Sequence record: OR670491.1
Reading direction: 5' to 3' (one strand)
DNA length: 64,000 bases
Shown here: piece by piece, positions 6,261 to 63,162 of the stretch
Layout: every line of letters starts with the position of its first letter
Numbering within the stretch: the stretch's first letter is position 1
Made by a program: the position numbers and the translations under genes
Notes under the pieces: generated by a model
What the model was told of the DNA's origin: nothing
The model's input: only the letters and a program-made list of their open reading frames with translations
Database searches by the model: none

Positions 6261-6273
6261 TCTGGAGATATAA

Positions 6274-6468: not shown

Positions 6469-6507
6469 AATATATTACCGAATAATTCAGTACTGGATAT
6501 GCTGTAC

Positions 6508-6636
6508 TGATAGCTTCTAGCCAGTACTGGATTCCTCCTTTTTCACTAGAAGCTGTCACTTATTCATACGTTTGTTACCCTCATAGCACTCGTTGTTTCA
6601 AAAGGTATCTTATTACCCCCCTCTCGTAAGATACTT
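6508..6636 (+). ncRNA. candidate sRNA with C-rich loops
   Basis: 13-bp stem 6508-6520/6546-6558 with loop containing TTCCTCCTTT; 10-bp stem 6603-6612/6627-6636 with loop TTACCCCCCTCTCG. Confidence 0.4.
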
Positions 6637-6678
6637 GAATTTAGTAGTTGACTTTTCAACTTCTTATATGTTATACTT

Positions 6679-6713
6679 AGGCTGAATCAAATGATTCGGC
6701 CTTTTTCTTTTTT
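6679..6713 (+). terminator. intrinsic terminator overlapping the start site of a promoter
   Basis: AGGCTGAATC-AAAT-GATTCGGCCT plus T tract; promoter TTGACT(6648)-18-TATACT(6672) lies just upstream. Confidence 0.7.
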
Positions 6714-6726
6714 AGGAGTGCTTTTA

Positions 6727-44465: not shown

Positions 44466-45668
44466 ATGAGATTCATTAAAGCGAGCTTGCAATCACAAAA
44501 GAAATGTCAAATTATAATTGAACACGATGGTTTGAAGATATCAGCATTTGATTTTGGAAGTACTAAACATTCTATTTGCTTTAATGATCCTGACAACGCA
44601 GTGTATTGTCTTATGATTAAAGTAAACTACTTACATAAACTTATAACAGAACCTGAATATTTTGTTCGTTTCAAAAACTTTAGTACAGAGAAACTACATG
44701 AGATATATAGAATTTCAATGATTGCATATACATTTTTGGGAATACCTGATGATGAACTTGATGTGACATTCCCTGGTGAAGCTAAAATACCTAAAGAATC
44801 ATTTTGGAAGGATTTATGAAACACAGACTTAATAAGTTTTACACTGACTATTTCAAAGATGTAAATGCATTCTTTAAAAAATACAAGATGCATACTAAAA
44901 ATGCACAGAACAGACGAAACCCAGCATTTGCCAGACCAAGTAGAAATATTACTTCATGTACACCTACGTGCTCAACGAAAAAGATGTTAAGTGCCAAAGG
45001 TATAAAGATAGCTTATATTGAAGCATATAAAGATAATGCACGTTTGAATAGTACTGATGATATTAAATTCAGTTCTGTTAAAATGAAAATTGGTGATATT
45101 CAGTGTGAAATGGCTGTTGATTTGGAATACAATCTGGAAATCAGAATGTATGTAGCTCACGATAGTTCACGAAAAGTGGAATTAATGGGAATAACATCTT
45201 ATATTTGTAAAGATACAGATGGATTTGCATTGAAAACTTCAACGTTCAACGTTGATTCGGTAGATGATCTCGATGGTGCATTAAATCATCTGATGAGTTC
45301 TGAATGTACAGACGAACTAATGTTCCAGTACTCACTGTTGTATAAAGATATTGACCAGTACATTGAAATGTGCAAAGTACTACAACGTGTATATGATATG
45401 TACATGAAGACTGGAAAACTAACTGCATTTATTTTATATAACGCAGTAGAGGTATGATATGGAAAAGTTTTATAGTTCACTACTTCTATCTACTGAACTT
45501 GTATCATTTATGGTGTGCAAGACTAAGAAAGATTATTACATTAATAATCCAAATCCTTTAAATGATATAGAGCTATCACTTAAATTTGTAAATTGTACTG
45601 AAAATATATTAAAGTACAACAATAAAGTTTATTTTAATGTATTGAAATTGATATTTGTATATAACTAA
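44466..45668 (+). other. three CDS; 44804-45457 is a FQxS-motif family member
   Basis: 44466-44819, 44804-45457 (TDELMFQYSLLYKD), 45459-45668. Confidence 0.7.
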
Positions 45669-46902: not shown

Positions 46903-46979
46903 AAAATCCTCCTTTATTCATTATACTATATTTAGCCAAAAAGGAAAAGCCAGTACTTGAGTACTGGCATTATAAAGAA

Positions 46980-48155
46980 TCAAATTGTAGGAAGTAGGAA
47001 TTCTTTCATAACAGATGAACTACTCGCACTGACATTATCTGGTGATTTCCCTGCGTAGTATAATTTATTATTAATGAACATATATAATGTTGCATCATTC
47101 CCTGCAACAAGAGAAACCTCTTTATTAAAAACAACACCACTAGGTAAAATTGCTTCAACGAATGAACCTGATTCGCGTGTGGTATTATTTGCTAATTGAC
47201 CATTGTTATTATAACCAGTACTATAAATTTTACCTGAACTATAATACACAAGCCCACGTGTACTAGTGTTTTCTATACGAAGGAATTCACTATCATCTGG
47301 AACTGAAGTTGATAAAGTTGCATTTAACTTATAAGCGGATGTTGTATTATTATTACCCAACTGACCATAACCTTGATATCCTAGTGTATACATAGGACAT
47401 GATTCTGGTGTACCTTTAGTTATAACACCAAAATAATTCGAACTACAAAAAGCGTCTATAACTTCTGTAACAGGTGTACCCTTATATTGAACCCAAGGGA
47501 ATACATATGATTGTTGTTTGCCATTCCCTAAAGTACCAGAGCTTGTTGTTCCGGTACGCCATATTGTATCATCAAGTTTAATAATCCAGTTAGCAGATGT
47601 TATAGATGAACAGAATTTTTTAACATTATCAATTAAGTATGTAAATTTATTATAATATGATGCAGTGTTTAGCCCAAACTTAGCACCAGTATTATCACCT
47701 AACAAATATAAACTATTATCAGTACCTAAAATGACAGCATAATCATAACCTACATATATCTCTTTTATTTTTGAAATACCAAATTGTGTAAAATAGCTTG
47801 TACATTCAGTGAATGTTGTTACTGTATTTGTTGTATTATTACCTAACCATTTATCAAAACCACTAAAAAAGAATCTATCATCATTTGTGCGTATTAGACA
47901 AAAAGCGTTCCCTGTACTACACCAGAAATCTTTAACATTGCTATATATTTTTGTCCATTCCTGTACCTGTGTCGTATTACCTAGACCAAAAATACCACCA
48001 TTTTGAAGACCGATGGCCCATACTGAACCATTTTTATCAAGTAGCATTGTAGTTGTAAATGAGTATCCAGATGATGGTGTAACCAATTTAACAAAATTTG
48101 GGATATATGGCACGACCTTATTTCCGTACTTAGCCATCCTTGCAAAAGGTAACAT
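46980..48155 (-). CDS. RCC1/BLIP-II-like protein (MLPF family)
   Basis: MLPFARMAKYGN; YSTGYNNNGQLA repeats. Confidence 0.8.
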   Translation of the reverse strand: MLPFARMAKYGNKVVPYIPNFVKLVTPSSGYSFTTTMLLDKNGSVWAIGLQNGGIFGLGNTTQVQEWTKIYSNVKDFWCSTGNAFCLIRTNDDRFFFSGFDKWLGNNTTNTVTTFTECTSYFTQFGISKIKEIYVGYDYAVILGTDNSLYLLGDNTGAKFGLNTASYYNKFTYLIDNVKKFCSSITSANWIIKLDDTIWRTGTTSSGTLGNGKQQSYVFPWVQYKGTPVTEVIDAFCSSNYFGVITKGTPESCPMYTLGYQGYGQLGNNNTTSAYKLNATLSTSVPDDSEFLRIENTSTRGLVYYSSGKIYSTGYNNNGQLANNTTRESGSFVEAILPSGVVFNKEVSLVAGNDATLYMFINNKLYYAGKSPDNVSASSSSVMKEFLLPTI

Positions 48156-48229
48156 AATTTCTCTCCTTTATTCATTATAATGTATTTACCCAAAAAAAGA
48201 AATGCCAGTACTGGAGTACTGGCATTATA

Positions 48230-49573
48230 TTATTGTAAAGGTATTTCAGTTAAGGTGCTATATTGTGTTCCGTTATATATACCCCTCCAGTATAATTTAC
48301 CTTCAGTACTAATAACTAATAAACCATATGTTGTAAACCCTAGAGTTCCTCCGACATACATAGCATCTTTTATTCTAATACCAATGTCTTCATATGTAAA
48401 CTCTGATACTTCACCAGCATTCCACGCTGGACTGTAATAATAATCAGTATAAACACCATGTGCTTTATATAGGGACGTCAATCCAGGTTCAAAAATTACA
48501 GTTCCGCAGTAGTTCATTCTTATTTTAGTACTGGATGAAGTTGGTATATTACCAAAAATATTATCTTTTAACCCAGTAGTTAGAACGTTGAAACCACCAC
48601 CAATGGAGTTAACGTTATTCACGCCACTTAGACTCATACCAACGTTGTATCCCATGCAATACACACTACTGCTACCATTCCAGTAAGAAAAACCGCCGCC
48701 ACGACCACAACGATATAATTGTGAATTTGAACAGTACATCATACCTTCGTTTGATGCGTCATAGTCGTCTGCTGTTCCAATTGTAGCTACAGTAGTCCAA
48801 GTTTTAATTACTTGGTTTGCACTAGCTGGTGTTTGTATGCCATATCTGATATTATATCCCTTACCGACTATGGTCCCATCTAATAATTTGGCATACAGTA
48901 CTGGTCTAGCCCCATTATAATAAACGTTATTATGTGACATATCAATTGTACTTCGTAATGAAACTGCTTTTTGTGTCAATTGGTTATCTTTAGTAAAAGA
49001 TGAAAAGTAGTAATCTGCTGTGGAGTTGTTTATTAAACCCTGAAAGGACTGACCCATATACCAGACTTCTCCGTTTGAGTTCAATGCTGCCAAAATACAA
49101 CTATATTTGGATGTGTACCCAGTATTAGTGCCTGGACCTTTATCATACCCACCACTGAATACCATATCAACGACATCACCAACGCTAGTGAAATATGACG
49201 AAACATCGATGAATCCAGATGTTAAAAATGGTGCAGTCGTCATCCCTGTATTTGTGAATATTCCATTTGCATATACACCACAAAAATTATACGAACCATC
49301 AATATCCTGTACTATGATACCATTAGAAAGTAACCAAAAGTTTTTTACATTTTTACGAACCAATTCAACACCTGCACCATTATTAGGAGTTATTCCAAAT
49401 GTAATTGCTTTAGTTGTGCCCATGCCATATAAATTCCCATTGGTTGCTAATATTGCACCAAGCCAGTTTCCACCTCCATTACTATTACGACCCATACCAA
49501 TGGAATCGAATTTCTTTACAGTTGGAGCTTCTACTGTATTCCCATAATCAAATAATCTAACAAAAGGTAACAT
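48230..49573 (-). CDS. RCC1/BLIP-II-like protein (MLPF family), divergent
   Basis: MLPFVRLFDYGN; 447 aa with insertions. Confidence 0.75.
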   Translation of the reverse strand: MLPFVRLFDYGNTVEAPTVKKFDSIGMGRNSNGGGNWLGAILATNGNLYGMGTTKAITFGITPNNGAGVELVRKNVKNFWLLSNGIIVQDIDGSYNFCGVYANGIFTNTGMTTAPFLTSGFIDVSSYFTSVGDVVDMVFSGGYDKGPGTNTGYTSKYSCILAALNSNGEVWYMGQSFQGLINNSTADYYFSSFTKDNQLTQKAVSLRSTIDMSHNNVYYNGARPVLYAKLLDGTIVGKGYNIRYGIQTPASANQVIKTWTTVATIGTADDYDASNEGMMYCSNSQLYRCGRGGGFSYWNGSSSVYCMGYNVGMSLSGVNNVNSIGGGFNVLTTGLKDNIFGNIPTSSSTKIRMNYCGTVIFEPGLTSLYKAHGVYTDYYYSPAWNAGEVSEFTYEDIGIRIKDAMYVGGTLGFTTYGLLVISTEGKLYWRGIYNGTQYSTLTEIPLQ

Positions 49574-49645
49574 ATATTCCTCCTTTATTCATTATACTAT
49601 ATTTAGCCAAAAAGGAAAAGCCAGTACTTGAGTACTGGCTTTATG

Positions 49646-50797
49646 TCAATAAACATCCCAAGGTAATGGTGTCTTTCTAAACCCATACCTAGTTGCGTTC
49701 TGCCCATCTCCGGCTATGTATCTACCAGTACCACACTGATATAATTCAGTACTGCTACATATCGCACCACCAATAGTACCACTACCCCACTGAGTTATAT
49801 TGGAATATAATATTGGCAAATCACTACATTTAGTATATAATGCAACAGTAGCAGCACCACTCGCACCACCAAAAACACTTCGGTTCGAACCCGTGTAATA
49901 TATACCATCTGGACTCATAAATGCGGAAGTATAAGTTGTACTACAATCCACTGGACTTCTTATATTATTAAGATCACTTGGGTATACCCTAGCACCATAT
50001 GTGTATACATTACCTGTAGTAGTAATACCATTACCTAACTGACCATTATTTTGTCCACCACATGTAACTAACGATCCACTACCAGAAACAATGGCAGTAG
50101 CATTATAAGAAGTACCTATAACAATAGAAGCTCCCGCCAATAGGTATGGGGCAGGAACTCCGGCTGCATTCCCCTGACCTAATTCACCATTGACATTTCT
50201 TCCCCATCCGTATACAGAAGTGGTATCCAATTGGCATAGTACTGAACCATAACTAAACGTATATCGTATATCCTTCACTGCCGATGGTAAACCACTAACT
50301 TTAGTTGCAACACTAATAACGCCAGAAACGCCTGTTACTCCAGCGTTCGCGTTCAGATTACGTCCATATGCATATAAAGAGCCATCAGCAGTTTTAATAT
50401 GCATCATGCCATCTGTGCAATATAATGTATCTATACTACCCACTGCAACCTCTCCCATACTGGACGTTATATCGTTCCACCCAAGCGTTGTAGTACTAGA
50501 AATTAAGTTATTTCCGGCGTAAAGTATTCTATTATCATTAGTAACTACTACTGTATAATTGGCAGTAACGCCAATTAATCTAACTTTCTCGTATATCTTA
50601 GACCACATTCCTATTGAATTTGTGTTAGTATCCAGAAACCCCAACTGACCAGCGGTATTATATCCAATACCCCACACATCACCTTCACTATCCAATAACA
50701 CTTCATGGGAAAAACCAATCTTAAAATCTTTTATCGTTGGTGTTTCTGGAACAGGTTTAATATTTCCGTACTTAACCATTCTAGCAAAAGGTAACAT
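49646..50797 (-). CDS. RCC1/BLIP-II-like protein (MLPF family)
   Basis: MLPFARMVKYGN; VWGIGYNTAGQLG and VYGWGRNVNGELGQG. Confidence 0.85.
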   Translation of the reverse strand: MLPFARMVKYGNIKPVPETPTIKDFKIGFSHEVLLDSEGDVWGIGYNTAGQLGFLDTNTNSIGMWSKIYEKVRLIGVTANYTVVVTNDNRILYAGNNLISSTTTLGWNDITSSMGEVAVGSIDTLYCTDGMMHIKTADGSLYAYGRNLNANAGVTGVSGVISVATKVSGLPSAVKDIRYTFSYGSVLCQLDTTSVYGWGRNVNGELGQGNAAGVPAPYLLAGASIVIGTSYNATAIVSGSGSLVTCGGQNNGQLGNGITTTGNVYTYGARVYPSDLNNIRSPVDCSTTYTSAFMSPDGIYYTGSNRSVFGGASGAATVALYTKCSDLPILYSNITQWGSGTIGGAICSSTELYQCGTGRYIAGDGQNATRYGFRKTPLPWDVY

Positions 50798-50868
50798 AAT
50801 TCCTCCTTTTATTTGTTATACTATATTTAATAAAAAAGAAAAGCCAGTATCAAGTACTGGCATTATTA

Positions 50869-52059
50869 TTACAATTGTCTAGGTGTATCCAGAACATATC
50901 TATTTGTACTAGGACCACCATCATCATCAGTTCCGGTTGAATATATATTTTTCATATCAGCAGTTAGAAAAGTACGATACGAACCGCGATATATTTTTAT
51001 TTTATCATACATAGAATATGTTATTTCTGACGGCAATGGACATGCAGTAAATTTACCAATGGTAACATCAGAACCAACACCCAATGTGCCAGCATAACTA
51101 CTCGCATTTAAACCAGTTGCATATACACCTGCACTCGTAACTAGTATACTAGATTGTGTTGGGTATCCAGTATGAATTGAATACAAAGTACCGGGTGGTA
51201 AGGTTGTACTATTGTTTCCTAAAACTCCATTAACAGTGCTAGATGTAGTTTTATTTCCCCATGCTCCATTATTAGCTAATCCACCAACTAGAAACTGACG
51301 TGCTCCTGTATTTGGATTCTCCACTAAAGCACTGACTGAACCCATTGAGCATACAGTGTATTGTAACGTTTTTGTGTATGTTGTACTTGGCTGATATAAA
51401 GTATATTCATTATATAAAGTCCATGTAGTGCTGGAACTTATACCGGATGTACCACCACCAATATATAAATTATTTTGTGTATCAAAAAACATTGCACAGC
51501 TATTTGTTGACATTATTTGTGCAATATCAACATCTGGTGTTACAGCTTTAACAAATGAACCATCGGTTATTTGTTGAGTTTTTCCAGTACCATCAGCGAA
51601 TTGTTTAGCCCCACTCCAACCAGTACTCCATATTGTATTATTATCCATTAAGAAAGTAAACCACGTAGTACCTGCATACATCTGTTTAATTGAAGTACTT
51701 GAACTTTGTGTGAACAAATTTTCAATATATTGGTTATAACTTAAAAATGATGTAGTACTAGTTTCTAAACCAATATAACCACCATAGCCACAATAAAAAT
51801 AATTTAAGTCATTATCTTGTACTAACAAAGTTCCTTCTGACATCCAACAATCGTTAACGTTTTCTCTAATTAATGTCCATGTTCTTAATGCAGTGTTGTT
51901 TCCTCTCCCAAACTTCCCAAAACTATTATTGCCTCGTGCGTATAGTTGACCATCAGTATAAAGTACAACAACATCACTATTGATTGGTATTATTTTCTTA
52001 ATTTGAAGAGGCTCAGGTGTAATATTTCCATAATCAAACATTCTAACAAAAGGTAACAT
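50869..52059 (-). CDS. RCC1/BLIP-II-like protein (MLPF family)
   Basis: MLPFVRMFDYGN; LYARGNNSFGKFGRG. Confidence 0.8.
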   Translation of the reverse strand: MLPFVRMFDYGNITPEPLQIKKIIPINSDVVVLYTDGQLYARGNNSFGKFGRGNNTALRTWTLIRENVNDCWMSEGTLLVQDNDLNYFYCGYGGYIGLETSTTSFLSYNQYIENLFTQSSSTSIKQMYAGTTWFTFLMDNNTIWSTGWSGAKQFADGTGKTQQITDGSFVKAVTPDVDIAQIMSTNSCAMFFDTQNNLYIGGGTSGISSSTTWTLYNEYTLYQPSTTYTKTLQYTVCSMGSVSALVENPNTGARQFLVGGLANNGAWGNKTTSSTVNGVLGNNSTTLPPGTLYSIHTGYPTQSSILVTSAGVYATGLNASSYAGTLGVGSDVTIGKFTACPLPSEITYSMYDKIKIYRGSYRTFLTADMKNIYSTGTDDDGGPSTNRYVLDTPRQL

Positions 52060-52136
52060 AACTAATTCTCCAAATTCAAATAATTATAATGTATTTACAA
52101 AAAAAATACCAGCACATATTTCAGTACTGGTATCAT

Positions 52137-53318
52137 TTATGGTAAAATGATAGATTGTAACGAACTCATACCCAATGCTGGAACACTAGCCTGTGGTGCT
52201 GGAGAATTCAATTTTGGTGATGAAACCGCATATGACATTCCTGAACCCAAATCTGGATCAAAAACTACAGCACAATAATTCCCACTATATATAAGTCCAT
52301 TCTTGTATCCTTGTGCACTTTGAATGCATTTCGTGAACGTACCAATATCTGTAGTGGCATTTATTAAGTTCCTCCCACGATAACCGCAGGTGTATATGAA
52401 ATTATCATCGCCTATGTACATACTAGAATCCCCAGAAGAACTACATAGATAAGACATATAAGCACGCATGTTTTTAGGAGCAACTGACAATGTACCTGCA
52501 TAGAATTTATTATTCGAACCCGTAATATCACCATCACCCAATGCACCAAAACTTCCCCAGCCAGTACCATAATATCTCTTATCACTCAAGAATATAATAC
52601 AGTTGTTATTACACATCTTGACTTGATATATCAATGAAGGATCAACCCCAGGGAATGATTCAGTGTATGTTAGAACAGCCAGATCAGTACTAGCATTACA
52701 TTGATGATATGTATTAGTACCAGCGGACAAGATTGTTCCATTAGCTAACAGAATTCTCGCAGTACCAGTACCAGCAGTACAAGCAACTGCACTTCCTGCA
52801 CTTCCGGTGTATATTTGTCTGAAAGTAAAGAAACCAACAGTTTTACTTCCCTGCCCACTCCAACCAGTATTATCAACTCCACACGCCCATACTGAACCAT
52901 CTTCCATGATCATCATTACACCAAAGCGTTCTATTGAAATATAAACAATCTTTTTAGTATCAACTGCACGAAATCTAGAAGTTATATCAGTCCATACCTT
53001 AACACTTACCGCCGTCGCACTGGAAGTAGGATCTTCACCAGCTATCATTATCCTCCCATTGTTAGTAAGATACATTGTCTGACTATAACCAGTACTACAA
53101 AACTTAACACTATCAGTCTCTGGAACTTTTAACCACTCGTTGTAACGTGTTACGTTAGTGTTATTACCTAACTGATAATAGTTATTCATCCCAGATACAT
53201 ATAACACACCATCCTTTATTAAACTATAAGTCGCACTATAGTCACTACAGGTATAACGTGTACCCACAGGTGGCTCAACGACGTTCCCATAATCAAACAT
53301 TCTAACAAAAGGTAACAT
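52137..53318 (-). CDS. RCC1/BLIP-II-like protein (MLPF family)
   Basis: MLPFVRMFDYGN; LYVSGMNNYYQLG. Confidence 0.8.
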   Translation of the reverse strand: MLPFVRMFDYGNVVEPPVGTRYTCSDYSATYSLIKDGVLYVSGMNNYYQLGNNTNVTRYNEWLKVPETDSVKFCSTGYSQTMYLTNNGRIMIAGEDPTSSATAVSVKVWTDITSRFRAVDTKKIVYISIERFGVMMIMEDGSVWACGVDNTGWSGQGSKTVGFFTFRQIYTGSAGSAVACTAGTGTARILLANGTILSAGTNTYHQCNASTDLAVLTYTESFPGVDPSLIYQVKMCNNNCIIFLSDKRYYGTGWGSFGALGDGDITGSNNKFYAGTLSVAPKNMRAYMSYLCSSSGDSSMYIGDDNFIYTCGYRGRNLINATTDIGTFTKCIQSAQGYKNGLIYSGNYCAVVFDPDLGSGMSYAVSSPKLNSPAPQASVPALGMSSLQSIILP

Positions 53319-53394
53319 AATTCCCTCCTTTATTCATTATACTATATTTAATCAAAAAAAAAGAAATGTCAGTACTCAAGTACTGGCATTGTGT

Positions 53395-54574
53395 TTATCT
53401 AAAAGGAACGCACTTTTTGAATTTATATATATATCCAGTCTCACCTTGTTCAGTAAAATACCCAGGGTTTCCAGTCCAGTATAAATCCTCACCTATACTA
53501 ACTACCGATACTGAACCATTACCAATCGTACCAAACCACTCAACATGTGATAAGTCAACACTATCATCAAAGAATTCTATTGGTAATATTGAACCATAAT
53601 TCCCAGAGACTGCGTTGCGGCCTAAACCAGCACCATTAGAATTATATCCCTTACCATTCGTATTAATAATGTTAGTACTGGATTTTATTGCATTAACATA
53701 GGATACTGGTGAAAGTTTATCGAATGAATTTGCTGTTATATCGGTATAGGGATTGGTAGTAAATGATGACCTTATTATACCAGTATTTTCAGAACCACCT
53801 ATAGTCAACTGTGTGTTCCAACCAGCCGCCATTAAAGACAAAGCAGATGTACTACTTTGAACAATCAAACGTGTTACCCATCGTGTAGCTTGTACTGCAA
53901 TTACATGAGAACTACCAAGATTCAATGCAGTAAAACTAGTAATAGGCTTATTATCACCGGTTCCTAATTGATAAAAAGTATTCTCACCACAACGATAGTA
54001 TATACCATCTTTTATATAGTGAAAGTTTCTGCTCATTTCACTAGATGCAATTGCAGATACACTAGTGTCAATTAAGAGTGGAGATGTAATTGGTGCAGTT
54101 GCTGTACCCAATTCACTTGCACCATTCATGCCTATACCATATAACTGACTGTCACTTGTGAGTATTAGCATAGAATTGTTAGTACTGGTTGTTGATGTTA
54201 TTTTTATATCTTTTATAGAACTTGCAGAGATAGATCCAAAATATGATTCACAACGAGTCCACGTTGAAACAGAAGATGATATACCAAACACCGAGTTTGT
54301 CCCGCTATAGTACAATTCCCCTTGTTTTGTTCTAATTATAGTACAATATAAAGAACTCCAGAAATCATCAACACTATAAGGACATAAAACCCATCTATCC
54401 AAAAAAGATGAACCAGTAACTCCCATTTTTGCTGATTGGTTTCCGTCCACGCATATATAATGACCCATCACTGTATAATACGCTTATTGAATTTTCATCA
54501 CTATTAATTTTAACAACAGTATCTTTGACAGGGGCAATATTCCCATAATCAAATAATCTAACAAAAGGTAACAT
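53395..54574 (-). pseudogene. frameshifted RCC1/BLIP-II-like gene (MLPF family)
   Basis: MLPFVRLFDYGN starts at 54574 but is out of frame with track ORF 53395-54471; span 1180 nt = 3n+1; break near 54440-54442. Confidence 0.75.
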
Positions 54575-54644
54575 ATATTCCTCCTTTATTCATTATACTA
54601 TATTTAATAAAAAAGAAAAGCCAGTACTGAGTACTGGCATTATG

Positions 54645-55754
54645 TTATTTTGGTAAATCAATTTTAGTAAAGACTGCAACATCTGCACTTGCACCTGGAA
54701 TGGCGTAATACGATCCAGTACTATATACATCCCCGTCTTTGGTTAATAATGATGTTAATCCGTCACTAAAAGCAACATCACTAATCTCACTAACTTCTAC
54801 AGGTAATTGTAAATTAGCAGCACTATAGATAGCACCCGTTTGAGAATTGTTTAATCCCAAACCACGGTTTCCCCCAATACCTTTCTGATATGCACTAGTT
54901 AATATAATTTGCGTAGCCGTGCTTGTTGCCTCTGAATTTGTCATAAACAAAGGTGAATTATTAGGTAAAGTACTTACAGGAACTGCTTTGAATGTAGTTG
55001 AATCTGAACTAAGAAAGTTTGGAGTTGTACCACATGTGAAATATGATGTACCATTATAGTAATTGAGTGTATGACCACCAATAGCTGCATCTATTACACC
55101 AGAACTACGCAGTCCCCAAATGTTAACTTGTGTTCTGTTCCCTGTGCCATGTAATCCACGGTCATTCCACCCTGAACTATATAACTTATTATCTATGCTA
55201 ATATACATACTATCATTAGGAGTAGACATAACTTTACGCACATTAGAAGCACATAGTGTTAATGTATATATTGATGAAGAACCAATCCCCAATACACCAC
55301 GGTATCCATTAGCCCCAGCACCATAGAGTACTGAACTTGAACTGAGTACAAATATTACACCACCATTGCATACAATATTAGCAATTTGATTCACAGGAAT
55401 TGTATTTGTAAACCACTCCGTTCTATCAACTAATGTAGTACTGTAAGAAGTTGTTGATGATGATGTGAACCAATATGTTTCACCGGATGTCCATATCGTA
55501 TTGTCATTTTTAATAATAACAAGTGTTCGTCCTCCAGTGAAAAAATTAGAAACATCTGCACTTACTAATGTCCAAGAAGATACCGTGTTTTTATTACCAT
55601 TTCCAGATTCACCACCTTGATTTCTGCCTATGTAATATAATTCATGTGAATCAGTCAATACGAATTGACCTTGTGTAGAAGCACCAACTTTTATTATATT
55701 TTTAGGACCAGGTGTAATATTCCCATAATCAAACAGTCTTACAAAAGGTAACAT
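54645..55754 (-). CDS. RCC1/BLIP-II-like protein (MLPF family)
   Basis: Likely start MLPFVRLFDYGN at 55754 (GGAGGG RBS); LYYIGRNQGGESGNG. Confidence 0.8.
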   Translation of the reverse strand: MLPFVRLFDYGNITPGPKNIIKVGASTQGQFVLTDSHELYYIGRNQGGESGNGNKNTVSSWTLVSADVSNFFTGGRTLVIIKNDNTIWTSGETYWFTSSSTTSYSTTLVDRTEWFTNTIPVNQIANIVCNGGVIFVLSSSSVLYGAGANGYRGVLGIGSSSIYTLTLCASNVRKVMSTPNDSMYISIDNKLYSSGWNDRGLHGTGNRTQVNIWGLRSSGVIDAAIGGHTLNYYNGTSYFTCGTTPNFLSSDSTTFKAVPVSTLPNNSPLFMTNSEATSTATQIILTSAYQKGIGGNRGLGLNNSQTGAIYSAANLQLPVEVSEISDVAFSDGLTSLLTKDGDVYSTGSYYAIPGASADVAVFTKIDLPK

Positions 55755-55762
55755 ATTCCCTC

Positions 55763-56965
55763 CTATTGTTGCCATAACTGCGTTGGCATTAATGTTAGTG
55801 TAGTAATACTATAAGTGCCATCAGGCAATCTACCACCATTACCATTCCAGCCACCACATGCATATAATTTATAATCTTTAGTAATTATTATGGTTCTGCT
55901 CCAATCTTTAGATGCCATAAGAACATTGTCATAACCACCACTTATTGCATTAAGATTAAAAATATTCCAAGTTCTAACTAATGTATTAGTTCCATTACCT
56001 TCTTGACCATATGAGTTAGCACCACTACTTCTAACATATGGTGCGTATTGTGCCATAGGTGCACCAATTGATGCATTTCCCATATTACTTGGACAAATAA
56101 AAGTACTGTACTTACTTACATCAACCGTGACCGATGTGTTCCTAATTGGTGTTAGCTGATTTACAGATGTAGTCGTACCATTACCAGCTTGTCCAGTACT
56201 GTTAACCCCGCTATAATATACAGACCCACCAGTAATAAACCACCAAGTAACATCGTATGTAGTACTAATATGTTCTACATTACTAATCACGAATTTGTTC
56301 AAATATACAACAGAACTACCACCACATCCACTTTCACCAAAGTTATCCTTACCACAAAACCATGCATCTTTATTTGATTTGATATAGTGCGTTCCTTGTA
56401 ATGAACATGCCATATGTGTAACTTCACCCATATTAGTCATAACTGTTAGTGTAGGTATGGAATTTTTATTACCAGACCCACATTCACCATTGGTATTTCT
56501 TCCACACGCAATTACTCTACCATCGGTTAATAATATTCTAGTACTTTCACCTATATATACACTCTTGATCATATTAGCCATAACACCAATTTTATTAAAT
56601 GAAGCAGTAACATCAGTCCATGTTCTCAAATAACCATTAACAGGTGTTGCATCTCCATAATCAGAAAATGCACCAACCGACCCAGTGTAGTATATTTTAT
56701 TATCCAAATCAATCATCAATGAACCTTGAACACCAAGCCAAAAGGCTGCACATCGCGTTGCAAGTACTGTAAATGACGCAACTGCTGCTGAATTCCCAAG
56801 ACCAAATTGATAAAAGTTATTACTACCATAACCATATAAAGTATTAGTTGGGCTATGTAGATACATACAGTTTGTATAATGTTGTTGTAAAACATTTGAG
56901 AACTCTATTGGTTCTGGCCCTGGTGCAATATTCGCGTACTTAACCATTCTAGCAAAAGGTAACAT
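55763..56965 (-). CDS. RCC1/BLIP-II-like protein (MLPF family)
   Basis: MLPFARMVKYAN; IACGRNTNGECGSG. Confidence 0.8.
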   Translation of the reverse strand: MLPFARMVKYANIAPGPEPIEFSNVLQQHYTNCMYLHSPTNTLYGYGSNNFYQFGLGNSAAVASFTVLATRCAAFWLGVQGSLMIDLDNKIYYTGSVGAFSDYGDATPVNGYLRTWTDVTASFNKIGVMANMIKSVYIGESTRILLTDGRVIACGRNTNGECGSGNKNSIPTLTVMTNMGEVTHMACSLQGTHYIKSNKDAWFCGKDNFGESGCGGSSVVYLNKFVISNVEHISTTYDVTWWFITGGSVYYSGVNSTGQAGNGTTTSVNQLTPIRNTSVTVDVSKYSTFICPSNMGNASIGAPMAQYAPYVRSSGANSYGQEGNGTNTLVRTWNIFNLNAISGGYDNVLMASKDWSRTIIITKDYKLYACGGWNGNGGRLPDGTYSITTLTLMPTQLWQQ

Positions 56966-57066
56966 ATTTTCCTCCTTTATTTGTTATATCATATTTACCC
57001 CAAAACAAAAACCCTTGACAACCTTTCTGGACTGATGTACAATAGAAAGAAATTAAGGAGAAATGT

Positions 57067-60000
57067 ATGAACAATTCAACAGATCACTACCAAGAACTTA
57101 GTCAAAGTACTAAGAACTATATGAGCTACATGAACGCAGAAGATTTCGCAGTCTTCCTCGGAAAATTCTGTGCAATCAATACCCTCAAAAAAAGTACCAG
57201 TACTACAAGTGTACTTATGTTGAATTGCTTTATAGAGAACATCCTTGAGGAACTTCAAAGCCCTGACGAAAGTAAACGATTCATGAACCTTTTGTTACTG
57301 GCCTCTATATGACTCAAGAACAAATTATGCAGTACTACCTATGTGCTATATCAAAAGAACATCTGAATAGCATAGGGCATCAACAAATTATACTTGCAAA
57401 TGCGAAACGTTCGGCACTTCTGCTTAACTCCATCAGAAATAACCTCATAAGGAATTTTCTGGAAGGTAACGAATCTATGCAGTACTATTTCATCTTAACA
57501 CTACTAATCGAGTACTAAATGAATAAAGAACAATTATTTCAGTACTATAAAAGTACTCTGTCCAAAGGTCTACAGGAAAGTATAGCAGTTGAGTCTGCAA
57601 TACTACAGAACCTTAATGCAGTAGAATTCACAAACAGAATCACCAGGCACGCACAAAATGCTTTACAAGGACATGAAACCTTGAGATACTATCACATCAT
57701 CGTGCTTTGTATGGAGGTATAACAGAACAAATGAATCCAGAACATCTAGAGTACTACAAGACATTCATGAACCACAAGGATCAGTACAGTTACAATACTG
57801 CTATGGGGCATTTTCGATACCATACCAAAAAAATGCAAAAGCACACACTAACACTATGGACTGTACAAGCACAACGAGACGAACTAAGATTGTGTGCTAT
57901 AATTAAAATCCTGAACATCTAAGGAATACTATGTACGAGCACAAAGAACAGTACTTAAACACTCTACCTAAAGATATACAAAGAGCATTCCCTTGTGCTC
58001 CGTGGGATTTAAACAGTAAATGGGGTTTTATTGAGTTCTATAACGATGTATGTATTGTACTGGAAAGTAAGTCCCTCTCAATGCAGTACTGTTCAATCTT
58101 GAACCTAATTTTTAAGTACTAAAACTATGCAAACATTCTATACAGATAGACTAAGCCTTAGAGATACTTTTATGTACGAAACCTTTGTTAAGTACTATAA
58201 CTTAGGTACTCCAATTACAAAGAATATTAATCTACAGCACTGCACACACTCAGCAGTACATGACCACGATCCGTACAGATACATCTTAGCCCTTTTAAGT
58301 ATATAAGGAACACTAATGAAACTCAATAATTACAGTAAACAATACCTAAAGCATTTTAAGTACCTCAAAAGCATTAAGGCTGAATCTATCACCAGCAGCT
58401 ACGTTTACAGCCCTAATGTACTAAAACAATTAAAGTACAAGAAAGAAAAAGTATCAAAGAACCTCAAAAAGTTTCTTAAGCACAAAGACGCAAAGATTCA
58501 GTACTTGAACATTAAAAACGATCATCCAGTACTAAGCCTCAATACAAGTCTAAAGAATCTGGATAACTCTTCATTTATGCTTGAGTTCAATATAAATGAA
58601 AATACTCCAGCGGTTTTTACAATTGCGTATAATAAAGCACAAATCTTTTTAGGTGCAAAAACCGCACTTAAACTCAGTAAAGCACAATTCTGTTTAGGTG
58701 ACCAGTACTACGTAGGTAGTGTACATATTGAACTCGAAAAAGATATGTACTTCGGTAGTACCCACGATAATCCAGAACATAAAGATACTATTGACTTCTT
58801 CAGGAATCTCCCTAAAGAGTATTCAGAAGATGAAATGTTCCAGTGGAGTACTATTATTAAAGACCCACATCTTTGCTACGAAGTGTATAAGAAAGTACAA
58901 GGGATTAAACAAATGATTAAAGAAAATAAAAAAATGTACCAACTCTTGCAGTTCTTAACCGGAGAAAATCTAATTGTTCAAAGACCATAAAGAGTACTAC
59001 AGAAATCAACTCCCAAAGGAATGGCAAATAACATTAGAAACTAACCTAGCACAGATATATACCCAGAAGTTTCTTGCTATGACATGGGAGCACTGCATTG
59101 AGTCAGTACTGAATTCTTCAAATGAATCACAATATCTCAATACTCTTTTACTTGTATATAAATTCTAAAAAGGAATAACAAATGCAATTCCATGAACATA
59201 TGGAGTACTACAGAAAACAACTACCAGAACCTTTATCGATGATAATCGGTTCCAGAAGTTTAATAAGTAATCCCAATTTTCATATGCGTAGTCACTATAA
59301 ATGTACTGCTTCAATTTGTAATGGAACTGCTCACAATGAACCGCACCAGCATCTATACCAAATCCTTAAACTAATATATCAGTACTAAATTATGCACGAA
59401 TATAAAGAGTACTACAAAGATAAAATCCCAAAGTTTCTACAATACCAAATACCAGATGCTGCACTAGGAATAAATGATGTGCACACCTGTACAAGATTCT
59501 ATCAATGCACTGAAAGTTTTCTGGTAGATGATTATGACCAATGCAAGGTGTACTATGTTATTTCACTAATATATAGGTACTAAATCATGCACAACGATTT
59601 CTATATACAAAAACTTATCGACGCTGGCCTGGAAAGCTTCCCGATAAATCCTGTACAAACAAAAGGATTGCACTGGTACTTCATCCCCTGTACTAAAGCA
59701 TGTATAAACCCCAGCAATTACAAGGATCTATACCACAATATATTAATACTCGCATTGAGGTACTAAATTATGCAAGAACACTTGGAGTACTACAGAAGCC
59801 ATCTCCCAAAGAAGGCACAAAGAAACTTCGACCAACAATATATAAACCAAAAGAATCAGTTCTATAATGCATTCTATTCGTCTATGAAAACTATTGCTAT
59901 ACAAGGCAAAGACCCGTACTATAGCATCCTGAACATCATCTTCAAGTACTAAAGCATGTACAGAGACTTCTATATAAGTAAACTTAATCCTGTACTACAA

Positions 60001-61022
60001 ACTCGTATTCCTCCAGCGAAATTTATCCTCAAAACAAAAGCACAAAGGTATGAGTTCAAAAAGTGTACAAAAGAAATACTCAGTACTAAAAGTAATAAGA
60101 ACATATACTATCAAGTACTCGTCCTTATATTCAAGTACTAAAGTACTAAAGGAATAAACATATGCAACACCAGCACAAATTGTACTACACGCAATTTCTT
60201 AATCAGCAACTACAACAATTTATACCTAATGAACCATTACCATATGATCATCCCCTGGGTGCACGCGTTTTCAAAAGAACTATTAATGAACTATTGAGTA
60301 CTACCGACGACGATTCCCTGTACTACTGCTTAATTAAACTTATATATAGGCACTAATATGCAACTCCTGCACAGAGAATACTACACACAATTCCTTAAAG
60401 AGAACTACAGAGATTCAGTCCCCGTAACTCCTTTTGACCCAAATAACCCAAGTTCAATCTTCCTCTTTAACGACGCAACACGTACTGCACTCTGTACTAC
60501 CAATAAACATTGGCACTACGCATTTGTACTTATACTTATATACAGACACTAAGGCACTAACATGAATGAGCACAGAGAGTACTACATAAAGAGACTTCAC
60601 CCCGACCTACGAGATACTATACCATTCGTTCCACATAATATACATGAACCCGTAGTGCAGTACTACTTTAATATAACAGTACAAGCCGCATTAAGTGAAT
60701 ATAGACTTGAGTACTTCACTGTACTAAAACTTATATATAAGTACTAACCCCTTGACATATACTCCAAGAATGATATACTACTTTCTATATAGAAACAATA
60801 CAGAGATAACATATGCACGAACATAAAGATTTCTATGTAAGCCAACTCCCCGTAATAGACCAATTCTGGTTAGCTGATGCAGCACCGTGTAATACAGATA
60901 CTAAGTACGGACAATTGTGCTTTGTTGAATCTATAAAGAAAGTACTACAACAAGATAAAACTAAGTACCGTAAAGAAAAAGACTTGTACTTTAATATAGT
61001 AGAACTTACCTTTATGTTCTAG
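57067..61022 (+). other. tandem array of about 15 paralogous 59-71 aa genes, interrupted by one FQxS-family gene
   Basis: 57309, 57519, 57707, 57931, 58127 (not in track), 58974, 59182, 59392, 59587 (not in track), 59770, 59956, 60162, 60358, 60562, 60813; consensus M.EH.EYY...L ... Y...L.LI(F/Y)(K/R)Y*; 57067-57312 more distant. Confidence 0.8.
58316..58990 (+). CDS. hypothetical protein, FQxS-motif family
   Basis: SEDEMFQWSTIIKD motif; Lys-rich N-terminus. Confidence 0.75.
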   Translation: MKLNNYSKQYLKHFKYLKSIKAESITSSYVYSPNVLKQLKYKKEKVSKNLKKFLKHKDAKIQYLNIKNDHPVLSLNTSLKNLDNSSFMLEFNINENTPAVFTIAYNKAQIFLGAKTALKLSKAQFCLGDQYYVGSVHIELEKDMYFGSTHDNPEHKDTIDFFRNLPKEYSEDEMFQWSTIIKDPHLCYEVYKKVQGIKQMIKENKKMYQLLQFLTGENLIVQRP

Positions 61023-61102
61023 TATAGAGAATAGTACAGGATACTAAGGTCTAGATGTGTTCCTAGGGAAGCATTATAACAGGCTTTAACATCTCGTAAA
61101 GA

Positions 61103-61150
61103 TGTTAAAATTCAGCCTGCTCGACGTCTGAATTGTTAAAATTCAGCCTG
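61103..61150 (+). repeat. 17-bp direct repeat pair
   Basis: TGTTAAAATTCAGCCTG at 61103 and 61134; partial inverted copies at 61085-61093 and 61180-61188. Confidence 0.85.
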
Positions 61151-61707
61151 GACAAATGCGATCACTAGGATTCTATCTAGGCTGAATCCCGTAATCACAA
61201 GTACGCATATGTAATCATATATAAACATTTCCGTGAGAAGTTTTGAGTACTGTATAGTATTAAGAATCACCGTAGGAGCACAGAATGATTAAGAATGCAC
61301 GGGAATGATTCAGAATGATTCAGTACTGATATGTCACTAAGTAGGCAGAGGAAGTCTGCCGTACTTTTTAGTTTCCAAGCTCCTTTTCCATTTTTCAAAT
61401 TACATCAAATGCAATCAAAAGTAATCACGCAATGATTAGTACTGAATTATTACTTTCACCTTAATTTCAAATACCCGTTGACCCTTCGGGGTAAAATTCC
61501 ATTACCCCTTGAGGCTCCAGCAAAAAGTTGGTTAGTACTCCATCCTAAATCTCGATCCTAAAAATTTTGGAGTACCTATGAAATAAAAGTTGGATCTTCG
61601 AAAGTTGAAATTTACGTTGGGATGATTAGGATTTGTGAACTATAATGTAGTTCAAGTTGGAGTACAGAGTGAGAACAATCTAGAGTACTGAAAGATGAAA
61701 TAACATC

Positions 61708-61735
61708 TTGACAATACAATTCAGTACTGTATAAT
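61708..61735 (+). promoter_or_regulatory. consensus promoter with no downstream ORF
   Basis: TTGACA-16-TATAAT with TCAGTACTG in the spacer, followed by the hairpin GGAACGG-CGGCAA-CTGTTCC. Confidence 0.6.
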
Positions 61736-62106
61736 GTTGTACATAGGGTGAGGGAACGGCGGCAACTGTTCCTTAATCTCAGTATCATGTCGTGAGACAT
61801 TACGCAAGTTATATCCTCCTGTGCATAGTGCTGGTGGTTATCTCTTGAACCTCATTTTTTCTCGTGAACTAAACAGTACTGATATTAACAGAATGGTAGC
61901 AGTACTGATATTAATCTAATGCATTATGCCACCAGCTTGTGCTGGTGGATTCCCTCTAACAGTATTCAGTACTACATGATGGTCTTCATCCTCCTGGGGT
62001 AACATAGTGAAGGTTATGATGGCAGTACTGAATACTCCAAACTCAAGATGGATTAAGGGTGTAGTACTGACGGATTTTGGGTGTAGTTACCCTGGATGGA
62101 TTTTGG

Positions 62107-62258
62107 ACGTAGATATGTCTAGCCCTCCAGAAGTCTGGAAGTAAAGATGGCTATCCATCTAGACGGCTAAACGGCTAGATTTCTGGATGGCTGGACGTTT
62201 GGACGGCTAAACGGCTAAACGGCTAAACGGCTAAACGTCTGGATGTATGGATGGCTAA
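62107..62258 (+). repeat. degenerate 8-bp tandem array
   Basis: ACGGCTAA x4 exact at 62203-62234; in-phase variants (ATGGCTGG, ACGTCTGG, ATGGCTAA and others) on both sides. Confidence 0.85.
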
Positions 62259-62883
62259 ATCAAAATTTTATTTTGTTTTTTCCAATAGTTCCCCTACCGC
62301 GTGGGGATAGTTTCCCCGCAGTATCTGGTGTTAGATTTTTCTGAATCTGGAATCATTATCTTATAAACTGGGGGCAATGTCAACGGCCTGGACGGATATT
62401 TTTAAAAATTTTTTCAGTACTGAATTTTGGGCGTAACTATGCACCCGGTGGGCTTGAGTCTTTCTCGACTTGATGGAACTATTATACAGTACTGAAAAAA
62501 TAAAGCAATACCCTGGAAGCAAAAAAGTTTTAATTAATTTGCTTGCTATCCTGGGCCGGACTATGGTACTATATTTCAGTACTGAGAAAGTGCGTTTACC
62601 TGCTAGGGTGCGGGAGTGTATCCTTTTTTTATATCTTGAATTTTGGACGGATCTTCCCACCCCCTGGGGTATCCGCTTTCTCGCGTCTATGTAGTAATTA
62701 TACGCTTTTTCAGGATCAAGTCAATACCTAAAAACAAAATAATTGAAAATAATTTAACGCGTTTAAACGGCCCGTAACGCCCTGGAATGATTAGAATGGT
62801 GCAAATGTATAGCTTAGGTGTATTAATGCGTTAGAATGCGTCTGAGGCCGTTTTATGGGGTGTAGTAGTGATTTGGTTGATTC

Positions 62884-63047
62884 AGTACTGAATAATAGTA
62901 CTCCTATATAGAAAGATAGTTCCCCTGGATTGATTCAGTACTGAATGATAGTACTGAATAATAGTACTCCTATATAGAAAGATAGTTCCCCTGGATTGAT
63001 TCAGTACTGAATGATAGTACTGAATAATAGTTCCCCTATATAGAAAG
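62884..63047 (+). repeat. 66-bp tandem repeat, 2.5 copies
   Basis: Units start at 62884, 62950 and 63016; each full unit has three AGTACT sites. Confidence 0.9.
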
Positions 63048-63079
63048 AAAACTATTTTAAAAGTATTTGTAGAAAGTAC

Positions 63080-63139
63080 TTGCACAGTACTGATAAAAGC
63101 GTATAATGTTTTACATCGAGAGCGGGAACTCTTCCCGCT
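63080..63139 (+). promoter_or_regulatory. early promoter with leader hairpin
   Basis: TTGCAC-16-TATAAT, then AGCGGGAA-CTC-TTCCCGCT. Confidence 0.7.
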
Positions 63140-63162
63140 ACACTTTAAGAGAGATTAATACG

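Follow-up and report, generated by a model that had tools for sequence, protein, structure and literature searches.

A tandem array of diverged small genes, predicted to encode helical bundles, beside the terminal repeat of the jumbo phage vB_EcoM_JNE01

The window analysed here, a stretch of 64,000 nucleotides from record OR670491.1, belongs to Escherichia phage vB_EcoM_JNE01 (JNE01), a jumbo Asteriusvirus of 355 kb whose sister phage, Turkey5, shares 96-97% nucleotide identity with it. The right-hand end of the unique genome, some 320 nt ahead of the direct terminal repeat (DTR) of about 21 kb, carries a row of small open reading frames (ORFs) at positions 57067-61022, all on the same strand. 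The initial annotation had read this row as one family of about 15 diverged paralogs, two of them missed by the gene calls. Indeed, an iterated HMM search recovers 15 head-to-tail members of 59-71 aa between 57309 and 61022 (E 1e-10 to 1e-19), with pairwise amino-acid identities of 11-42% (median 24%, maximum 42%). Both missed members were confirmed, the frame at 59587-59766 being unannotated in the deposited record and that at 58127-58306 annotated as 135 nt only. The row is however not made of this family throughout, as its first ORF is unrelated and an unrelated ORF of 224 aa splits it. The features discussed below are as follows.

45459..45668, + strand: remote partial family member, 69 aa, C-terminal half only, beyond the RCC1-like gene array
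57015..57043, + strand: sigma-70-type promoter-like site upstream of the array (TTGACA, 17 nt, TACAAT; 11/12 matches)
57067..57312, + strand: leader ORF, 81 aa, at the array head in relatives too; not a detectable family member
57309..57518, + strand: family unit 1, 69 aa, HMM match; weak positional ortholog in main-clade group A, 56% amino-acid identity
57519..57722, + strand: family unit 2, 67 aa, HMM match; pN/pS 0.26
57731..57922, + strand: family unit 3, 63 aa from ATG (71 aa from an upstream TTG), HMM match
57931..58122, + strand: family unit 4, 63 aa, HMM match
58127..58306, + strand: family unit 5, 59 aa, HMM match; truncated in the deposited annotation, intact in Turkey5; ortholog in main-clade group I, 58% identity
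58316..58990, + strand: 224-aa ORF within the array, of the unrelated family phrog_29152, which has no assigned function
58974..59168, + strand: family unit 6, 64 aa, HMM match; begins at a TTG that lies within the end of the 224-aa ORF
59182..59388, + strand: family unit 7, 68 aa, HMM match
59392..59583, + strand: family unit 8, 63 aa; divergent allele in Turkey5
59587..59766, + strand: family unit 9, 59 aa, HMM match; unannotated in the deposited record; intact in Turkey5, pN/pS 0.47
59770..59952, + strand: family unit 10, 60 aa, HMM match
59956..60141, + strand: family unit 11, 61 aa, HMM match
60162..60356, + strand: family unit 12, 64 aa, HMM match
60358..60552, + strand: family unit 13, 64 aa, HMM match; ortholog in main-clade group Q, 58% identity
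60562..60747, + strand: family unit 14, 61 aa; junction of a one-unit indel; unit used for the AlphaFold model
60752..60779, + strand: another promoter-like site (TTGACA, 16 nt, TATACT with TG), inside the 65-nt gap that separates units 14 and 15
60813..61022, + strand: family unit 15, 69 aa, HMM match; final gene of the unique region
61341..61370, + strand: terminator-like hairpin and T run, at the inferred DTR start
61340..63162, no strand assigned: non-coding head of the terminal repeat, where AGTACT is densest (11.5/kb), with one 66-nt and one 8-nt tandem repeat

Neighbouring genes are closely packed, with gaps of -4, 0, 8, 8, 4, 13, 3, 3, 3, 3, 20, 1, 9 and 65 nt. The leader ORF is preceded by a strong Shine-Dalgarno sequence, shows a pN/pS of 0.23 against Turkey5 and has orthologs in the main clade that are 28-30% identical to it; its membership of the family was considered and rejected (hhalign probability 1.2%, HMM E 0.04). 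The 224-aa ORF is kept in all relatives, including EJP2, a phage devoid of small units. A word-indexed search retrieved a single protein for it, and its AlphaFold model (pLDDT 36.7) was unusable for a fold search. Two short DNA repeats had raised the idea that its C-terminal third is a fused unit, which single-sequence and profile comparisons did not support.

Outside the array, the family HMM finds the remote partial member and nothing else in the window (HMM E 1.7e-5; hhalign probability 93.5%, E 2e-7, over residues 33-68), and within it all matches lie on the array strand. The phrog_11711 profile matches 11 of 16 ORFs at E <= 0.01 (best E 1e-13; E 1.5e-5 for unit 14). The small ORFs are genuine genes under purifying selection. 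All of them are open and intact in Turkey5, with a pooled pN/pS of 0.31 between the two phages and values of 0.2-0.5 for individual units, and across 35 ortholog clusters pN/pS is 0.43 overall, 0.24 in the conserved columns and 0.50 in the others. Start codons either have Shine-Dalgarno-like sequences ahead of them or adjoin the stop codon of the preceding gene.

The modelled unit folds in silico into four helices forming a small helical bundle (pLDDT 88.7), and the profile displays conserved hydrophobic or aromatic columns spaced i, i+4 along the helices. The proposal of small helical proteins is thus supported, and they have a conserved core and a variable remainder. The picture of conserved ends around hypervariable middles does not fit these data, since profile columns 36, 40 and 44 are conserved as well and pN/pS in the variable columns is 0.5, not above 1, which gives no sign of an arms race.

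The family appears, from the sequence searches, to be confined to Asteriusvirus. It has only 21 representatives among 1.84 billion proteins, and the word-indexed search found only 8. Sequence searches of Pfam, NCBIfam and PDB gave no family relative, Foldseek gave no match in PDB (best E 2.5) and no significant match in BFVD (best E 0.099). The top three BFVD matches are family-sized and apparently family members, at least one of them being a 121Q protein. A tblastn search with one unit against 50,697 phage records, a query too short and diverged for this purpose, returned JNE01 and Turkey5 only; the arrays of other relatives were located by synteny and a local HMM.

The surroundings of the array are far better preserved than its nucleotide sequence, as the flanking RCC1-like gene is 97% and the DTR 90-98% identical to those of relatives, whereas nucleotide matches to the array itself are confined to the JNE01/Turkey5 pair. 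The interval between the conserved flanks varies from 5.5 to 12.9 kb, and the number of units is not fixed: the 11 genomes contain 0, 14, 15, 15, 15, 16, 16, 18, 19, 19 and 21. JNE01 has 15 and Turkey5 16, and the difference is one 190-nt unit whose junction falls in a stretch common to two neighbouring unit starts. In unit 14, the 5' flank and first codons correspond to one Turkey5 unit and the remainder to the next. Altogether, nine whole-unit indels have junction overlaps of 9-48 nt at unit starts or boundaries, eight of them, with overlaps of 9-39 nt, being found among other Asteriusviruses. Unit 8 has been replaced as a block (59391-59563), with 81% nucleotide identity to Turkey5 versus 96-100% for its neighbours. 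These alignments show an array that has changed by gain, loss, replacement and occasional relocation of whole units, through homologous recombination, unequal or ectopic, in common stretches of 9-48 nt at unit starts and boundaries.

Amplification and shuffling at the unit ends had been proposed on the model of a gene accordion. The shuffling part stands, the units behaving as exchangeable cassettes joined at conserved ends, but recent amplification does not. The JNE01 paralogs share too little identity for a recent accordion, and most of them correspond one-to-one to orthologs in other genomes. In those genomes, the most similar paralogs within a genome reach 50-58% identity. Repeats at the DNA level between units span no more than 30-50 nt (63-82% identity). 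Ortholog order is largely colinear between genomes, apart from differences of single units and one unit that has moved.

The array promoter has a -35 hexamer invariant in 8 Asteriusvirus genomes. Within the array there are two good promoter-like sites only, and the terminator-like matches are weak and on the opposite strand; over the whole scan, promoter-like sites are not enriched relative to shuffled sequence (28 versus 27.6 expected). An Rfam scan returned known tRNAs only. Perfect sigma-70-type promoters are present in the non-coding head of the repeat. The start of the DTR is inferred from phage vB_Ec-M-J, whose position 1 (annotated DTR 1-21525) aligns to window position 61340, and experiments on fEgEco12 have verified the DTR (PMC13070987). 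For the related phage CBB, an early host-takeover region was proposed, made up of short-ORF stretches with RpoD-like promoters inside and alongside the terminal repeat (PMC5259590). Since the promoter is conserved and of sigma-70 type, the genes are tightly packed and a terminator-like hairpin lies at the boundary of the repeat, the organization suggests an early accessory operon, a model whose timing and single transcription unit we infer from consensus matches.

The hexamer AGTACT, in which the initial annotation saw the recombination sites, is not a peculiarity of the array. The window contains 222 sites versus 21.7 expected, and this roughly 10-fold enrichment holds throughout, whether in coding sequence of any frame or in non-coding DNA; it is also seen in distant Rak2-like phages. 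Across Rak2-like jumbo phages the excess is about 7-24 times, above what amino-acid sequence and codon usage allow. The JNE01 array has 33 sites in 3956 nt (8.3/kb). The remainder of the window has 2.7-3.4/kb, and the non-coding DNA next to the array 11.5/kb. Densities are 7-10/kb for the arrays of the two lineages, 6.4/kb for the DTR genes and 9-11.5/kb for the DTR head. In the pairs of relatives tested, with small samples, AGTACT sites were not conserved in significant excess over other hexamers. These counts show AGTACT to be a genome-wide over-represented palindrome that, in the JNE01/Turkey5 lineage, happens to overlap the conserved Tyr codons of the unit ends. Literature searches on the motif, on Asteriusvirus paralogs and on expression turned up neither the array nor the AGTACT excess, and no expression data for an Asteriusvirus.

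Our preferred reading, to which we give a probability of about 0.6, is that the array holds an old, Asteriusvirus-only family of helical-bundle proteins of about 60 residues, organized like an operon, renewed by whole-unit turnover and playing an early accessory, host-binding role. The host RNA polymerase would transcribe the array early from the TTGACA promoter at 57015, ending at the 61341 hairpin, and downstream units would be translated by coupling. The small proteins would be dispensable accessory factors, because a natural relative, EJP2, lacks every unit while keeping the array promoter and a homolog of the 224-aa gene. Each protein may present a different surface on the common scaffold, and together they would most likely bind host targets during takeover or counter-defence. 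This last role is argued purely from context, because the searches yielded no relative of known function, by structure or by sequence.

Other explanations have to be weighed against this one. That the small ORFs are untranslated and their periodicity is that of a non-coding repeat could find some comfort in the unusual composition of the coding strand, where C exceeds G (GC skew of -0.10 to -0.18) despite the + strand genes, and in the two units passed over by annotators. We give it almost no credence, as the frames are open in both phages, synonymous changes exceed non-synonymous ones per site, starts are placed as expected of translated genes and the fold prediction is confident. The small proteins could also serve the RCC1-like beta-propeller paralogs as assembly partners or adaptors, both arrays being one module. 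The two arrays are indeed adjacent and divergent in all genomes compared, copy number varies in both, and the remote family member lies beyond the RCC1-like genes. However, EJP2 has seven RCC1-like genes and no small unit, copy numbers in the two arrays do not go hand in hand (9 RCC1-like genes and 15 units in JNE01), and the array promoter is of sigma-70 type whereas the structural genes of related phages carry a T4-late-like motif (PMC5259590). We therefore regard such a partnership as improbable.

The two remaining alternatives concern AGTACT. In the initial annotation, palindromes bracketing many units directed the amplification and shuffling of a rapidly diversifying library. The hexamer does occur at the N-terminal Tyr codons of 9 of the 15 JNE01 units and at the Tyr-stop of 6, but only 5 have it at both ends. 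It is also present in the junction of the JNE01/Turkey5 indel and in the left boundary interval of the unit 8 replacement, yet the other eight of the nine indel junctions lack it. In eight other genomes, where unit turnover is equal, only 23 of 137 starts and 11 of 137 ends of units carry AGTACT, although these units retain the Tyr residues and encode the same protein ends as GAA-TAC. Inside main-clade units, sites occupy all positions and all frames. Adding the enrichment throughout the genome and the lack of any close-copy paralog pair within a genome, a role of AGTACT as recombination agent is not borne out, and we judge it very improbable. The second alternative gives the region importance chiefly as DNA: the array and the terminal repeat would form a dense AGTACT zone read by a putative factor that might serve early-promoter control, end protection, packaging or condensation, with the Tyr-rich protein ends shaped by AGTACT pressure. 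The higher density in the arrays, DTR genes and DTR head speaks for it, as do the codons: at column 7, 67 of 68 Tyr codons are TAC, whose share is 0.36 genome-wide, and the preceding Glu in JNE01/Turkey5 is GAG in 12 of 14 against a genome share of 0.23. So does CAGTACTG, found in the array-promoter spacer of the main clade and of EJP2 and in the perfect promoter at 61708. Purifying selection at the protein level and the confident fold oppose it, as do the individual sites, which differ in position between lineages and are, in small samples, no better conserved than other hexamers. Taken as the main meaning of the region, it seems unlikely, if less so than the others; it can coexist with the early accessory protein family instead of replacing it.

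Leaving the protein family as our main reading, we tentatively suggest, at somewhat less than even odds, that AGTACT, extended as (T)TCAGTACTGA(A), serves Rak2-like jumbo phages as a functional DNA signal throughout the genome. It would be read by a phage or host protein, and the Tyr-rich ends in JNE01 and the signal would have been mutually fitted; its density peaks in the terminal repeat and the non-coding head of that repeat, in early-promoter spacers and in the array. Binding of SlmA, which acts in E. coli nucleoid occlusion, was considered as its meaning and rejected. The SlmA site is a 12-nt palindrome with G, T, purine, A, G, pyrimidine in each half (PMC3020112), the phage flank of AGTACT is mostly T-T-C, and we found 0 full sites in the 64 kb and 10 of 444 half-sites that fit.

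Jumbo phages are studied and used as therapeutic agents, and most of their genes are unnamed. Sixteen "hypothetical proteins" can here be turned into one defined family whose fold is predicted, whose place next to the terminal repeat is clear and whose turnover, unit by unit on short homology, is documented, and the array offers a compact natural series for probing the roles of jumbo-phage accessory early genes. The case also illustrates how an eye-catching motif at gene ends can arise as a side effect of a signal present throughout the genome; the approximately ten-fold enriched palindrome lacks an explanation and may be the more interesting lead.

How does this array compare with known systems? 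The family itself had already been clustered as phrog_11711 from earlier Asteriusvirus genomes, an entry silent on function, array, turnover and position. In the hyperplastic regions of T4-type phages, small early genes are reportedly shuffled via promoter-early stem-loop cassettes (work ascribed to Comeau and colleagues in 2007 and Arbiol and colleagues in 2010). The JNE01 locus resembles them as a plastic block of small accessory ORFs between conserved flanks, with predicted early sigma-70-type promoters, and by the one-at-a-time gain, loss and exchange of genes via short conserved boundary sequences. However, its units are paralogs of one family with gaps mostly of 0-13 nt (range -4 to 20; 65 before the last unit), they do not each carry a promoter and stem-loop cassette, and the joining sequence is the coding 5' end of the unit rather than a regulatory cassette.

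Poxvirus gene accordions, which Elde and colleagues are said to have described in 2012, share with our array the tandem repetition of one gene and a copy number that differs among close relatives by recombination between copies. Accordion copies are recent and nearly identical, and expand under acute selection. In JNE01, the difference in copy number between relatives and the junctions in shared sequence are found, but near-identical copies are not: the copies are 11-42% identical, each with its own ortholog elsewhere. The array also recalls the terminal multigene families of large DNA viruses and the host-takeover modules of SPO1 and T5, in or beside long terminal repeats, with which it shares a position beside the genome end and many small genes of unassigned function that vary among isolates, have a presumed early role in the host and, in our array presumably, are dispensable. 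Those of SPO1 and T5 type are made of mostly unrelated genes, each with its own promoter, whereas the JNE01 array is one operon-like block that lies just beyond the repeat and is made up of a single family.

The region 57000-61100 is 100% identical to Escherichia phage vB_EcoM_JNE01 of the genus Asteriusvirus (OR670491.1, 355,583 bp; the window starts at record position 248,001). Its identity to phage Turkey5 is 96%, and apart from one 100-nt stretch it has no nucleotide match in other phage records. The ORF list gives here an unbroken plus-strand row of small ORFs, the array, whose successive spacings are -4, 0, 8, 8, 4, 13, 3, 3, 3, 3, 20, 1, 9 and 65 nt. The main features are as follows.

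45697-56965, minus strand, nine paralogous RCC1-like genes upstream of the array
57015-57043, promoter-like site (TTGACA, 17 nt, TACAAT) upstream of the leader ORF
57067-61022, plus strand, the array
57067-57312, leader ORF, 81 aa
58316-58990, 224-aa ORF (phrog_29152), splitting the array
59392-59583, unit 8
60562-60747, unit 14
61341-61370, terminator-like hairpin followed by a T run

A family HMM, seeded with the window's own paralogs and iterated over the ORFs of eleven genomes, recovered 15 members (units) in JNE01, all of them inside the array and on its strand; eleven match phrog_11711, a family of unknown function. The row of about 15 paralogs described in the initial annotation is thus confirmed in part: 15 ORFs do form a family, and two more in the same stretch do not belong to it, the leader ORF, which has no detectable relation to the small proteins and whose conserved orthologs head every array, and the unrelated 224-aa ORF, found mid-array in every genome. 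Two members said to have been missed are indeed wanting in the deposited annotation, where 59587-59766 is absent and 58127-58306 is called from an internal start only. Over 57000-62000 the coding strand of the array has more C than G (GC skew -0.10 to -0.18) and more A than T, in contrast to all other gene blocks of the window, whose coding strands are G-rich. The probable reason is an amino-acid composition high in Tyr, His, Gln, Asn and Lys and low in Gly, Asp, Ala and Val.

The units are real, old genes. In a profile of 122 distinct members, all have Tyr at column 8 and 97% have Tyr or Phe at column 7, followed by Leu at column 12 (82%), Phe at 36 (61%), Thr or Ile at 40 (89%), Leu or Ile at 44 (87%), Tyr or Leu at 53 (97%), Leu at 59 (90%) and Tyr at 63 (75%); columns 13-35 and 45-52 are variable. 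Turkey5 has intact copies of all 15 units, of the leader ORF and of the 224-aa ORF, and the pooled pN/pS of the family between JNE01 and Turkey5 is 0.31, or about 0.21 without one replaced unit. When the most divergent pair was taken from each of 35 ortholog clusters, the ratio was 0.43, with 0.24 in conserved columns and 0.50 elsewhere. The family is under purifying selection, somewhat relaxed, and nothing in the latter value points to diversifying selection on the variable columns. An AlphaFold2 model of unit 14, built on an alignment of 19 paralogs and relatives, predicts four helices (residues 2-10, 14-17, 30-44 and 50-60; pLDDT 88.7, pTM 0.70), in agreement with the small helical proteins proposed initially. 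Nothing in the PDB resembles this model and BFVD holds no significant match (best E 0.099); only its top three matches resemble it, at least one of them a 121Q protein. Against 1.84 billion representative proteins, a complete HMMER search returned 21 matches, all of 59-69 aa.

Copy number is not fixed among relatives.

Family members per genome (iterated HMM)
EJP2: 0
SD-2_S15: 14
JNE01, 121Q, CMSTMSU: 15 each
Turkey5, PBECO4: 16 each
WPEC3: 18
slurp01, ECO103: 19 each
vB_Ec-M-J: 21

Clustering at 60% identity yielded 42 ortholog groups of units, about 26 of them common to the eight genomes of the main clade, where order is mostly kept and arrays differ by presence or absence of single units, by one unit found at two positions and by one swapped pair. 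All JNE01/Turkey5 units are below 60% identity to those of the main clade; four are weak orthologs (52-58%) in the same relative order. Since the flanks are 97% (RCC1-like gene) and about 90-98% (terminal repeat) identical to relatives, divergence or exchange has gone much further in the array than around it. EJP2 keeps the promoter and a homolog of the 224-aa gene with no small unit at all, and the family is therefore dispensable in nature.

The changes follow unit boundaries. One 190-nt Turkey5 unit is missing from JNE01, whose unit at 60562 is a composite: its upstream flank and first codons are those of one Turkey5 unit, its body is that of the following unit, and the junction falls in a stretch common to both. 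Main-clade genomes show eight more distinct indels (167-202 nt, one of 392 nt), with overlaps of 9-39 nt at unit starts or where the stop of one unit meets the start of the next. Furthermore, mismatches between JNE01 and Turkey5 concentrate at 59391-59563, exactly one unit between neighbours that are 98-100% identical: this is a one-unit allele replacement. The nine indels and the replacement support a turnover of cassettes joined through their conserved ends, a joining for which short shared sequence suffices.

The initial annotation had placed this recombination at unit ends containing the AGTACT palindrome, in a gene accordion. Its interpretation is partly supported: recombination at unit ends holds, the role given to AGTACT is not supported. 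Only the JNE01/Turkey5 indel junction carries the hexamer, the eight main-clade junctions having none. In JNE01, AGTACT overlaps the N-terminal Tyr codons of 9 of 15 units and the Tyr-stop of 6, with just five bracketed at both ends, and in eight other genomes, among 137 units, it occurs at 23 starts and 11 ends, its sites within units being scattered over all positions and frames. Across the genus the terminal Tyr residues are kept and AGTACT is not. A single synonymous position accounts for the difference between lineages at unit starts: the Glu codon before Tyr is mostly GAG in JNE01/Turkey5 (12 of 14 cases) and mostly GAA in the main clade (34 of 41), with a window-wide GAG share of 0.23. 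A recent accordion is likewise not supported: near-identity of copies defines the poxvirus type, and JNE01 paralogs are 11-42% identical (median 24%), the closest pair in any genome reaching 58%.

The most serious rival to a protein-centred reading would give the AGTACT richness of the region a meaning in itself, at the level of DNA, and is compatible with a coding function. AGTACT occurs 222 times in the window, where dinucleotide shuffles predict 21.7 (at most 35 in any shuffle), an excess of about 10-fold. Together with CAGTAC and GTACTG, which extend it, it heads the over-represented hexamers by a wide margin; extended to (T)TCAGTACTGA(A), it forms a palindrome of 10-12 nt. Outside the array 127 sites, divided 64, 25 and 38 among codon frames, compare with 40 when synonymous codons are shuffled, an excess of about 3-fold, and with 23 when codon order is shuffled; density there is 5.2 per kb in non-coding and 2.5 per kb in coding DNA. 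Nine other Asteriusviruses show a 15-24-fold excess in the corresponding regions, and two only distantly related phages, a Klebsiella phage and a Yersinia Eneladusvirus, one of 7-fold in samples of 12 kb.

AGTACT density by region (sites per kb)
Bulk of window: 2.7-3.4
Small-gene arrays, both lineages: 7-10
Terminal-repeat genes of vB_Ec-M-J: 6.4
Non-coding head of repeat: 9-11.5

The array thus stands about 2.7-fold above an already enriched background, as does everything around the genome end. The unit-start Tyr codon is TAC in 67 of 68 cases over both lineages (window-wide share, 0.36), which argues that DNA-level constraint or homogenisation also acts on the 5′ end of units, though not in the form of AGTACT. 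An identification of the sites as SlmA sites, as defined in PMC3020112, was rejected. Neither array nor excess is described in any paper we found, PMC3622015 and PMC7247149 included, nor did we find an explanation of the excess; this genome-wide palindrome is a more novel lead than the array itself.

The array lies at the edge of the direct terminal repeat. The depositors of vB_Ec-M-J annotated direct terminal repeats of 21,525 bp, and position 1 of that record corresponds in alignment to window 61340, 318 nt past the last stop codon of the array; several other records start 1.63-1.70 kb upstream of the same first gene. In fEgEco12 PhageTerm gave a 20,993-bp repeat, confirmed with restriction digests (PMC13070987). 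The promoter-like site before the leader ORF is followed by a strong ribosome-binding site, its -35 hexamer is invariant in eight genomes, EJP2 included, and a second such site precedes the last unit. As the promoter scan as a whole was not above chance, we only infer early, operon-like expression from these signals. In the related phage CBB, RpoD-like promoters concentrate before short ORFs beside and within the terminal repeat, interpreted as an early host-takeover region (PMC5259590).

The non-coding head of the repeat (61340-63162, start inferred) has 21 AGTACT sites (11.5 per kb), a 66-nt repeat carrying the extended palindrome (2.5 copies, 62884-63048), an 8-nt repeat, ACGGCTAA (4.4 copies, 62203-62237), and a perfect sigma-70-type promoter (61708-61735) with CAGTACTG abutting its -10 hexamer. 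Three of the window's four matches to what we take to be the Chi octamer lie within 120 nt (~61829-61950), 500-600 nt inside the repeat start, two forming an inverted pair 4 nt apart. An intergenic element of 60-80 nt, with a promoter-like site and AGTACT in or beside its spacer, recurs at 85-88% identity between the small genes within the repeat (63059-63138 in the window, numerous sites in the repeat of vB_Ec-M-J), recalling the regulatory cassettes of T4 hyperplastic regions.

The window has other paralog sets. The RCC1-like genes are a second tandem array, of beta-propeller proteins (357-447 aa, 25-64% mutual identity) whose copy number differs among relatives; in one relative a copy bears the annotation virion structural protein, and phAPEC6 is reported to have eleven (PMC7247149). 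Beyond them, a 69-aa ORF (45459-45668, plus strand) matches the family over its C-terminal half (hhalign probability 93.5%), so that family members bracket the RCC1-like block. Blastp detected further tandem sets of two or three genes (32796-34178, 5829-7149 and 42687-43324; ~100-150 aa, 30-35% identical), in agreement with the ~10% paralogous genes reported for RaK2 (PMC3622015).

Taken together, the array is most likely a birth-and-death multigene family of small helical proteins with a common core and differing surfaces, expressed jointly and probably early from the terminal-repeat edge, that may bind host components in takeover or counter-defence. We assign this whole a probability of about 0.6, with much higher confidence in its structural and evolutionary part. 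The functional part, with host binding proposed from size, predicted timing, plasticity, dispensability and position and not from any homology, we put somewhat below even odds. Phrog_11711 already clusters the family, without a function. T4 hyperplastic regions contain promoter and stem-loop cassettes between genes, whereas the array has none; in the way it works it is nevertheless comparable to the plastic early regions found in T4-type phages and to multigene families at the termini of large DNA viruses.
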